A stretch of DNA of 64,000 nucleotides from Octopus sinensis (lineage: Eukaryota): NCBI RefSeq assembly GCF_006345805.1, contig NC_043013.1, forward strand, positions 25,172,001 through 25,236,000, read 5' to 3'. Positions 5,289-6,595 of the stretch are shown piece after piece (positions within the stretch are counted from its first letter, which is position 1; every line of letters begins with the position of its first letter). Both the position numbers and the translations under genes were made by a program. Below the pieces are notes generated by a model. The model made no database searches. It worked only from the letters and a program-made list of their open reading frames with translations, and was not told where the DNA came from.

Positions 5289-5376
5289 CTGATTTGGGAG
5301 GGTATCTATAGGCATTATTATTACCATAATCCACAACATCTGAGCCTGCATTTCTTCTACTAACGAGCGAACCCAT
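5289..5376 (-). CDS. MGRN1: MGRN1/RNF157 (Mahogunin RING finger) E3 ubiquitin ligase, coding exon 1; rest of the gene is left of the window
   Basis: MGSLVSRRNAGSDVVDYGNNNAYRYPPKS-G aligns without gaps to the recalled human MGRN1 N-terminus (MGSILSRRIAGVEDIDIQANSAYRYPPKSG) and to RNF157. It has an N-myristoylation-type MGxxxS start. The 88 coding nt end in a phase-1 donor, TCAG|GTTTGT, at 5289/5288. I found no exon-2-like MGGE motif in 1-5288. Confidence 0.92.
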
Positions 5377-5855
5377 TTTTAAAATCCTAGAATGTAAATG
5401 TCTTTAAAATTTCTGAATATATAAACATATCACTGAATGCAAGAAGACTTGAGCATGCTGTTGAGTATGCAAAAGCGATAAGAAAGAAGTGAGCATTGAG
5501 TCAAGATGCGACTTGGTGGTCAACACAATGGCGCCTACACAGCAGACGTCACCTCAACACATCACAAAAATACGAGAAAACATGAGAAATTTTTTTTTTA
5601 ATATTCAACCAAAAGTAAATATCATTGCCTTTAAAATTTTGATCTTGAACATAATAGTGGAAATATTACAAAAATATTTTAAAATAATTGTTTAAAAATT
5701 TAGTCATTTTTAAAAAGATTCTTTCTATTTTATTTATTTATTTATTATTTTTTTCGATAGATAGTATAAGAGAATTTCTGCAGTGGGGGGAAGTTTAAAT
5801 AATGGAATAGACATTAACATCAACATTTTTGAATAGTAAACTCTGCCTACAAATG

Positions 5856-5887
5856 TTCATTGGCCAATGAAAAAGGAGCTTATAAAT
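5856..5887 (+). promoter_or_regulatory. Back-to-back CCAAT boxes (perfect 16-bp palindrome) followed by a TATA-like box
   Basis: TTCATTGGCCAATGAA at 5856-5871 and TATAAAT at 5881-5887, about 260 nt upstream of the UBALD ATG. Confidence 0.5.
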
Positions 5888-5954
5888 TAGGTTGTCAATC
5901 AATGCACCACAACAACATCTTCCGAGAGTGAAGCTTGTAAACTGTGGTGTCAAT

Positions 5955-6090
5955 CACTGCACCGCCGCCACCACCCGCACCATTGCCACTACTACCGCCG
6001 TCACTGCCCCCACCACCACTATTACTAGTACTACTACCACCACCACCACCGTTCTCACCACCACCACTACTACTACAGCAACAACAACAT
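5955..6090 (+). repeat. Imperfect (ACC/ACT/ACA)n trinucleotide tract in the probable UBALD 5' UTR
   Basis: Directly visible in the sequence; it produces the spurious poly-Thr and poly-Val ORFs. Confidence 0.85.
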
Positions 6091-6149
6091 CTTCGGAATA
6101 TAGAAGCCAGAAGTAGGTGAATATTGGGGCATTGGTACCCAAACGAAAA

Positions 6150-6257
6150 ATGGATAATTTAAAACAACAAGTGATGATTAACCAGTTTGTTTTGGCCGCT
6201 GGCTGTCATGCCGAACAAGCTAAACAGTTATTACAAGCCGCAAAATGGCAATTCGAG
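6150..6257 (+). CDS. UBALD: UBA-like domain-containing protein (UBALD1/2, FAM100), exon 1
   Basis: [36 protein letters not shown] is near-identical to the recalled vertebrate [36 protein letters not shown]. Phase-0 donor GAG|GTGAGT at 6257/6258. Confidence 0.96.
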
Positions 6258-6511
6258 GTGAGTCTTTATTTCCTATCTATCCTATTCATATTTTCGTGTC
6301 ACCGAATAAATAAAAACAACATTCTTTATAACGTCTCTTAGACATTTATAGAAGACTGTTATGGAAACATGGCTAATGTTTATCTTATGACGGCTAACAT
6401 CCTCTTCTATAGTTATAGCTTTAATTTCTGCCGTTACATTCTAATCAAATATTTTTTCTTATAATTATTACTCTGACGTATTAATATTTAATTTTAAATC
6501 TCTAATTTCAG

Positions 6512-6595
6512 GCAGCACTTAGTATGTTTTTCCAAGATTCTTCTGTTCCCATGTGTCGAACGTGCAACGGCAGCCATGCGAACGGAAGCTATTCG
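6512..6595 (+). CDS. UBALD: UBALD exon 2
   Basis: Acceptor TTTCAG|G at 6511/6512. Encodes AALSMFFQDSSVPMCRTCNGSHANGSYS (vertebrate TALSTFFQE...). Phase-0 donor TCG|GTGAGC at 6595/6596. Confidence 0.93.

Follow-up and report, generated by a model that had tools for sequence, protein, structure and literature searches.

Nearly 600 ancestral pairs of unrelated genes, mostly arranged 5'-5' and separated by short gaps, are described in the main text of Irimia et al. 2012 (PMC3514665), where they are reported to show more conserved intergenic DNA and an excess of co-expression. The same text offers two explanations for such pairs, namely, shared promoters or other regulatory elements and regulatory blocks that surround developmental genes. 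A pair with this anatomy is present in the stretch of DNA analyzed here (the window), which comprises 64 kb of Octopus sinensis contig NC_043013.1 (positions 25,172,001 to 25,236,000). It consists of the first coding exon of an MGRN1/RNF157-type RING E3 ubiquitin ligase gene and a complete UBALD gene, which diverge from a short stretch of shared DNA. Because the anatomy of the pair fits the class of Irimia et al. 2012, it is taken here as a conserved ancestral divergent (5'-5') microsyntenic pair that is probably kept by shared cis-regulation. This kind of feature, the ancient divergent microsyntenic pair, is already well known, and the pair itself may already be included in that study's supplementary list of all pairs. 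A description of this particular MGRN1-UBALD pair was not found in the searchable literature, a body of text that does not extend to the supplementary list.

A sequence-only reading of the window had placed an MGRN1/RNF157 first exon on the minus strand and a UBALD gene on the plus strand, diverging over 773 bp, and both identities and the ATG-to-ATG gap at 5377-6149 were confirmed. The parts of the pair, in window coordinates, are as follows.

5289..5376, minus strand: first coding exon of an MGRN1/RNF157-type RING E3 ligase; 88 nt with a phase-1 donor, recognized by its translation and its match to exon 1 of orthologues.
5377..6149, no strand assigned: presumed divergent promoter and 5' untranslated region (5' UTR), 773 bp from ATG to ATG.
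6150..6257, plus strand: UBALD coding exon 1; its 36 amino acids (aa) form the greater part of the UBA-like three-helix domain, and the donor that follows WQFE is in phase 0.
6512..6595, plus strand: UBALD coding exon 2; 28 aa, in which helix 3 ends and a variable linker follows; the exon is preceded by AG.
49203..49373, plus strand: UBALD coding exon 3; 56 aa plus the stop codon, containing the family-invariant motif.

The minus-strand exon reads from 5376 down to 5289, beginning with ATG and ending in TCA G, and is followed by a GT donor at 5288-5287. It translates to MGSLVSRRNAGSDVVDYGNNNAYRYPPKS and leaves one further base, the G that opens a Gly codon, so that 29 and one-third codons of MGRN1 are available. 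The peptide begins with MGSLVS, a Met-Gly start that would fit N-myristoylation, a modification stated for MGRN1 in a 2026 review (PMC13161197), and the conserved exon-1 peptide MGSLVSRRNAGSDVVDYGNNNAYRYPPKSG ends in AYRYPPKS-G. Identity to the first exons of seven annotated MGRN1/RNF157 orthologues is 57-69% (those of Lottia, Capitella, Dimorphilus, Orussus, Portunus, and armadillo among them). The phase-1 intron falls right after the Ser codon of PPKS, and the donor position is identical in the window and in seven other loci (those of Lottia, Capitella, Dimorphilus, Orussus, armadillo, and Portunus and that of a eukaryotic contig, L008). In a read-through open reading frame (ORF) from a closely related assembly (P0141), all 30 exon residues are identical (30/30), and the intronic translation has diverged. 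Since P0141 conserves the exon residues while the intron diverges, the exon appears to be under constraint and functional. A chance match or a relic was considered as an explanation of the 88-nt ORF and was ruled out both by the same length, phase, and peptide in seven species and by the exon identity in the close relative with the diverged intron.

The window provides 5.3 kb on the MGRN1 side; the PF26192 N domain and the PF13920 C3HC4 RING domain are expected downstream, beyond its edge. Six-frame translation and a motif search covering 1-5288 revealed no additional MGRN1 exon on the minus strand. All that a 69-aa query joining the window exon 1 to Lottia exon 2 retrieved were short read-through ORFs; no close relative yielded a full-length protein. 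The window gene is probably the single invertebrate pro-orthologue of vertebrate MGRN1 and RNF157, with only its first exon lying inside the window.

The UBALD gene is complete in the window, encoding 120 aa in three coding exons with a second intron of 42.6 kb. Its ATG lies at 6150 (not 6151), and a GT directly follows exon 1. Exon 2 translates as AALSMFFQDSSVPMCRTCNGSHANGSYS; exon 3, which was located by an all-frame search for the UBALD family motif, has coding positions 49203-49370 and a TAA stop at 49371-49373, and its translation opens with LCTPANTPATPPNFPEAL. Exons 1 and 2 together match Pfam UBA_8 (PF22566) at E=2.9e-20 (72.1 bits against a gathering cutoff of 26) and PDB entry 2DZL, "Protein FAM100B" (human FAM100B/UBALD2), at E=2.7e-19, and the p47 UBA domain (PDB 1V92) is matched at E=0.0045. 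The AlphaFold2 model contains a confident three-helix bundle at residues 1-47, with predicted local distance difference test (pLDDT) values of 95-97, followed by a tail that is largely disordered apart from a short helix at 78-86. The phase-0 intron after W-Q-F-E is common to eight species, down to Capsaspora. According to the sequence-only reading, the exon boundaries of both genes (phase 1 after YPPKS and phase 0 after WQFE) match the human structures; they agree with those of a mammal, as judged from armadillo MGRN1 and UBALD1.

An alignment of 16 UBALD members (from Syssomonas, Capsaspora, sponge, nematodes, tardigrade, chelicerates, insect, copepod, sea cucumber, fish, and molluscs) contains two conserved modules, the UBA-like domain and the motif P-x-N-T-P-x-T-P-P-x-F. 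The latter is invariant in all 16 aligned sequences and occurs in the window as TPANTPATPPNF. At residues 68-78, in exon 3 and within the otherwise disordered tail, it extends as P-x-N-T-P-x-T-P-P-x-F(P-D/E-A-L), and it is kept from unicellular holozoans (Capsaspora and Syssomonas) to molluscs and vertebrates. The motif looks like a docking or phosphorylation site for a very old partner. The nearest named relatives of the window UBALD are gastropod proteins, with identities of 79% (Candidula) and 82% (Lottia) over the aligned stretch. In the searches, the UBALD family occurred only in animals and in their unicellular holozoan relatives.

The distribution of the pair was surveyed by fetching orthologues with flanks of up to 10 kb in both directions and re-searching the DNA by tblastn, since small genes are often unannotated. 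Outside the window, the head-to-head pair was found in four other species. The distance from ATG to ATG is about 1.97 kb in Lottia gigantea (including an assembly gap), 788 bp in Capitella teleta, and 467 bp in Dimorphilus gyrociliatus, and MGRN1 and UBALD1 are head to head in armadillo across a gap of 5.57 kb. In the Dimorphilus assembly (GCA_904063045.1), UBALD is an intact, unannotated three-exon gene located 467 bp upstream of MGRN1 (L003 9533-8948, minus strand); its product equals P0001, which is otherwise known only from a read-archive assembly. The list of genes at human locus 16p13.3 contains MGRN1 and UBALD1 together, and gene orders in the literature place UBALD2 next to RNF157 in goat and human. 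The claim that mammals hold the arrangement twice was thereby borne out, through the armadillo locus and the 16p13.3 list for MGRN1-UBALD1 and, as an adjacency, through the goat and human gene order for RNF157-UBALD2. RNF157 is described as a vertebrate-specific paralogue of MGRN1 in the 2026 review (PMC13161197); therefore, both duplicates retained a UBALD neighbor.

Given the presence of the pair in Spiralia and beside both vertebrate copies, an origin in the bilaterian ancestor is the parsimonious reading and, on these gene orders, appears well supported. The sequence-only reading had likewise held that the pair predates the protostome-deuterostome split, and the head-to-head pairs in Lottia, Capitella, Dimorphilus, and mammals agree with it. 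The linkage recurs in some of the other invertebrates and not in all of them: the genes are paired in Lottia, Capitella, and Dimorphilus and nonadjacent in the wasp, crab, sea cucumber, sponge, and bumblebee. No UBALD or MGRN1 partner was present within 10 kb in Orussus, Portunus, Apostichopus, Oscarella, Capsaspora, or eukaryotic contig L008, absences which, given the 10-kb flank limit, mean that the genes are not adjacent and are not proof that they are unlinked. In the chromosome-scale assembly of Bombus pascuorum, MGRN1 is on a 12.94-Mb contig and UBALD is on a different contig of 18.05 Mb. The further claim of "obligate co-regulation" is not supported in view of these seven cases; both genes are retained in insects without being linked, which contradicts obligate linkage in cis.

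Other genes occupy the divergent position next to MGRN1 in two of the species with a broken pair. In Orussus, a wasp related to sawflies, the close divergent neighbor of MGRN1 is a different gene encoding 1,058 aa with no Pfam family (L004 3425-9206, minus strand), and in the crab Portunus it is a different gene encoding 145 aa, also with no Pfam family (L007 4569-8069, minus strand).

The DNA between and around the two start codons contains the following candidate regulatory features.

5528-5533: YY1-like ATGGCG, within the gap.
5545-5551: GACGTCA, resembling a cyclic AMP response element (CRE), within the gap; a 7/8 match to the full CRE, the 7-mer being expected 0.03 times.
5859-5868: ATTGGCCAAT, two CCAAT boxes forming a perfect palindrome; the expected number for the two NF-Y-type boxes is 0.13 (P=0.0075).
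5881-5886: TATAAA, 13 nt after the CCAAT palindrome.
About 5955-6080: CCA/CCG-rich low-complexity run before the UBALD ATG.
3117..8791, no strand assigned: CpG-non-depleted island with an observed/expected (o/e) ratio of 0.99, versus 0.26 outside, and a weaker shoulder to about 12.2 kb.
6363..6386, plus strand: conserved noncoding block in UBALD intron 1, GGAAACATGGCTAATGTTTATCTT, with an ATGGC core (YY1-like) and a forkhead-type core, TGTTTAT.

In Lottia, Capitella, Dimorphilus, and armadillo, the corresponding gap contains the complete CRE, TGACGTCA, with P values of ~0.004-0.025 each from first-order Markov simulations; the element is missing from the 800 bp upstream of MGRN1 in the three loci with a broken pair. 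In every spiralian examined, CCAAT boxes are concentrated in the 300 bp that precede the UBALD ATG; this enrichment is given qualitatively because the strict NF-Y pattern, RRCCAATSR, misses evident boxes in Capitella and Dimorphilus. Armadillo shares the ATTGGCCAAT palindrome exactly, at ~360 bp upstream of UBALD1, and Dimorphilus has an arrangement similar to that of the window, CCAAT-N10-TATAAA. No base-level alignment of the gap across phyla was found. The low-complexity run at 5955-6080, ~125 nt rich in CCA, CCG, and ACT in the presumed UBALD 5' UTR, is open in several frames on both strands, giving poly-Thr or poly-Gly-like ORFs.

The CpG island measures 5.7 kb and covers both 5' ends, and its midpoint (5954) lies inside the 773-bp gap. 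The G+C content is the same in the island and its surroundings (0.34 versus 0.35), and the window as a whole is CpG depleted, with an o/e ratio of 0.32 and a median of 0.25 per 800-bp bin. The island would be the sequence signature of a single germline-unmethylated domain over both 5' ends. The pattern would also imply that the genome is heavily methylated and that the promoter island, which is not GC rich, is free of methylation.

The intron-1 block at 6363-6386 matches Lottia intron 1 (L001, about 10140-10165) almost base for base, and an ATGGC and a forkhead-type core (GTAAACA or TGTTTAY) lie within 30 nt of each other in UBALD intron 1 of four of four spiralians (loci L002 and L003 among them). 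The chance of this composite is 0.001-0.02 per intron for a pattern that was defined post hoc. The same composite is visible in read-through ORFs of the mollusc-like contigs P0003, P0004, P0007, and P0009-P0011.

Under the explanation that we favor, both genes would start inside one compact, presumably unmethylated promoter domain, and the CRE, the CCAAT/NF-Y boxes, the YY1-like sites, and the conserved UBALD intron-1 block would be its shared elements. These motifs would be in use, the two genes would be co-expressed, and a breakpoint between them would harm the expression of at least one, such that selection would act on cis-regulation rather than on a protein partnership. An anecdotal point on co-expression is that a single data set from mouse neurons shows mild enrichment of Ubald1 as well as Mgrn1.

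Several observations weigh against this explanation. The pair has been broken repeatedly without loss of either gene, in Bombus and probably also in Orussus, Portunus, and Apostichopus, and the constraint on it is therefore not absolute. A CRE is also found upstream of the sea cucumber UBALD, where MGRN1 is not adjacent, and thus it may be a UBALD element rather than a shared one. The motif statistics rest on random-sequence nulls, and promoters are generally enriched for CRE and CCAAT. The armadillo gap of 5.6 kb exceeds a classical bidirectional promoter, and the sharing of a promoter between MGRN1 and UBALD is something that we infer from the sequence features above.

A third gene may belong to the same neighborhood. 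In Dimorphilus, the next gene downstream of UBALD is a forkhead gene in the same orientation (L003 6241-7533, minus strand), and the same arrangement was found in the sponge Oscarella (L009 12119-13844, plus strand), where the record carries no Pfam entry. The two forkhead genes have an N-terminal DDSLTSLxWLQ motif in common, and their forkhead domains are 81% (Dimorphilus) and 77% (Oscarella) identical to that of Lottia FoxJ1 and at most 68% identical to that of any other Lottia Fox family. The Lottia domains were classified according to PMC7859237; a PDB search alone gave no Fox family for the Dimorphilus gene. Both genes were assigned to FoxJ1 on this basis. In the supplement of PMC7859237, the human gene order is EXOC7-FOXJ1-RNF157-UBALD2-QRICH2, and FOXJ1 is also next to RNF157-UBALD2 in the goat gene order from the literature. 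Thus, FoxJ1 and UBALD are neighbors in the sponge, and FoxJ1, UBALD, and MGRN1/RNF157 are neighbors in the annelid and in mammals. The only FoxJ1 microsyntenic pair given as previously described in PMC7859237 is FOXJ1-EXOC7, and no description of FoxJ1-UBALD adjacency was found in the searchable literature. A search for forkhead ORFs found none in the 64-kb window, in the 10-kb flanks of the Lottia and Capitella pairs, or in the flanks of Apostichopus UBALD. The gene orders are suggestive of an old three-gene FoxJ1-UBALD-MGRN1 block and do not establish it. Membership of FoxJ1 in the same old neighborhood may be an alternative that goes beyond the sequence-only reading.

The retention of the pair has other possible explanations, of which one, itself unlikely, partly overlaps the explanation given above. 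In it, the linkage would be held by FoxJ1 enhancers in and around UBALD, and UBALD, with MGRN1, would be a bystander in a FoxJ1-centered regulatory block. The position of FoxJ1 immediately downstream of UBALD in Dimorphilus and Oscarella is consistent with such a block, as are the human and goat order EXOC7-FOXJ1-RNF157-UBALD2, the forkhead-type cores in the conserved intron-1 block of four spiralians, and the 42.6-kb UBALD intron, long introns being typical of bystander genes according to the main text of Irimia et al. 2012 (PMC3514665). However, the forkhead ORF is lacking from the octopus, Lottia, Capitella, and sea cucumber sequences listed above, the mammalian FOXJ1 is on the RNF157 side rather than the UBALD side so that the order differs, and the MGRN1-UBALD1 pairing in armadillo is kept without FOXJ1 in the fetched 10-kb flanks. 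An intronic forkhead core could, moreover, bind any Fox protein and is no proof of a FoxJ1 enhancer. A simpler account, in which selection on linkage has no part, is that a gap of 0.5-2 kb is a tiny breakpoint target and the pair survives in slow rearrangers and is lost in fast ones. The very short gaps agree with this account, as do the survival of the pair in lineages noted for their conservative gene order (Lottia, Capitella, and mammals) and its loss in insects and a crustacean. Yet the pair is also retained in the strongly compacted genome of Dimorphilus and by both vertebrate duplicates, the conserved motif content and the shared CpG island are unexpected under pure neutrality, and pairs of this class exceed matched controls in co-expression and intergenic conservation, according to the main text of Irimia et al. 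2012 (PMC3514665). We regard purely neutral persistence as improbable.

It is also possible, if rather doubtful, that the linkage reflects a module at the protein level, in which UBALD would serve Mahogunin-type E3 ligases as a soluble cofactor, adaptor, or regulator and the linkage would keep the two products in fixed proportion. Both products belong to ubiquitin biology, and the nearest solved relatives of the UBALD domain beyond the family are the UBA-type domains of p47, OTUD7A, and TDP2. The combination of a UBA-like domain with an invariant short linear motif in a tail modeled as disordered suggests an adaptor-like build, MGRN1 is recruited via short partner motifs (MASRPF in MEGF8 and Attractin; PMC8254101), and both vertebrate duplicates have retained the pairing. 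Against this, no physical, genetic, or co-expression evidence was found and linkage is the sole support; papers naming both genes do so only in tables of loci or of expression, the 2026 MGRN1 review (PMC13161197) names no UBA protein, and no MASRPF or similar string is present in the window UBALD or in its 15 aligned homologues. No functional link between MGRN1 and UBALD is described in the searchable literature, a silence that counts as weak evidence against the module because UBALD1 is classed as "Tdark" (unstudied). The two genes are unlinked in the bumblebee and nonadjacent in five other lineages, though both families persist. MGRN1 orthologues occur in nearly all eukaryotic lineages (PMC13161197), a wider range than that in which UBALD was found, and so MGRN1 works without UBALD elsewhere. 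Linkage alone is also weak evidence for a protein partnership because ~600 ancient pairs are known and are mostly explained by shared cis-regulation. A more ambitious version would make UBALD a dedicated soluble Mahogunin partner that docks via NTPxTPPxF and reads ubiquitin via its UBA-like domain, and would make FoxJ1-UBALD-MGRN1 a functional and regulatory unit older than Bilateria, through which the control of receptors by ubiquitin would be tied to the program of cilia and left-right patterning; this we consider a long shot.

MGRN1 and RNF157 govern the levels of Hedgehog and melanocortin receptors, the patterning of the heart and of the left-right axis, and neurodegeneration. In human, both UBALD1 and UBALD2 count as "dark," unstudied genes. 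The divergent pairing, if kept from the bilaterian ancestor to molluscs, annelids, and both vertebrate duplicates, provides a specific and cheap hypothesis. If it is true, the adjacency of FoxJ1 in the sponge, annelid, and mammals would add an old three-gene block containing a master regulator of motile cilia.

No other recognizable genes were found by Pfam searches of the ten longest other ORF stretches or by a tRNA scan and an Rfam search of the whole window. ORF fragments at 32-472 (minus strand), 33036-33307, and 41879-42112 resemble transposases or the tails of long interspersed nuclear elements (LINEs), and repeated pieces similar to "AFYVPPAQEPV" occur in ORFs at about 14.3-14.6, 44.7-45.0, 46.7-47.0, and 58.3-58.6 kb. 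Pfam returned no match for 32-199, 293-472, 33036-33299, 41879-42112, or 58280-58603, and the mariner-like or LINE-like look of some ORFs is therefore unconfirmed by Pfam. An interspersed repeat family is found inside the MGRN1 intron, inside the 42.6-kb UBALD intron, and downstream, and the window is rich in (TA)n and (CA)n microsatellites.

Among known systems, the UBA_4/UBA_8-type domains (2DZL and p47 1V92) are the closest to the UBALD protein, which matches both and is modeled as a three-helix bundle; p47 has no counterpart of the invariant C-terminal motif, and ubiquitin binding by UBALD is putative, a search for publications on such binding having found none. The partnership of MGRN1 with MEGF8, ATRN, and ATRNL1 (MASRPF; PMC8254101, bioRxiv 2020.05.25.113944, and bioRxiv 2025.03.25.645338) is alike in that the ligase needs partners with short motifs and UBALD bears an invariant motif. 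Unlike those adaptors, UBALD is small and soluble, without a transmembrane segment or MASRPF. Genomic regulatory blocks, exemplified by Isl2-Scaper in the main text of Irimia et al. 2012, are comparable in that the FoxJ1 gene stands beside UBALD in the sponge and annelid and FOXJ1 beside RNF157-UBALD2 in mammals, and in that UBALD is a candidate bystander in which one intron is very long and another contains a conserved block; FoxJ1 lies outside the window and outside the Lottia and Capitella flanks.

The mammalian MGRN1-UBALD1 and RNF157-UBALD2 loci comprise the same two families; their first exons end at the same positions in the same phases, and the ATTGGCCAAT palindrome recurs upstream of UBALD. 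The divergent orientation was observed for armadillo MGRN1-UBALD1, and RNF157-UBALD2 is known here as an adjacency. The mammalian gap is 5.6 kb and GC rich, whereas that of the window is 773 bp and AT rich, and the window gene would represent the unduplicated pro-orthologue. In comparison with the 5'-5' conserved ancestral microsyntenic pairs, such as HSPE1-HSPD1 (PMC3514665), the co-expression and promoter sharing of MGRN1-UBALD are inferred, and the pair is not named in the main text of that paper. HSPE1-HSPD1, as described there, reaches Capsaspora and fungi, whereas MGRN1-UBALD is broken in more lineages. The size expected for the gap of such a pair, under about 1 kb, is kept from ATG to ATG in the window, Capitella, and Dimorphilus and is exceeded in Lottia and armadillo. 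The window pair nevertheless resembles this class in its unrelated divergent genes, its own very short gap, its conservation between spiralians and vertebrates, and its recurrent promoter motif content.

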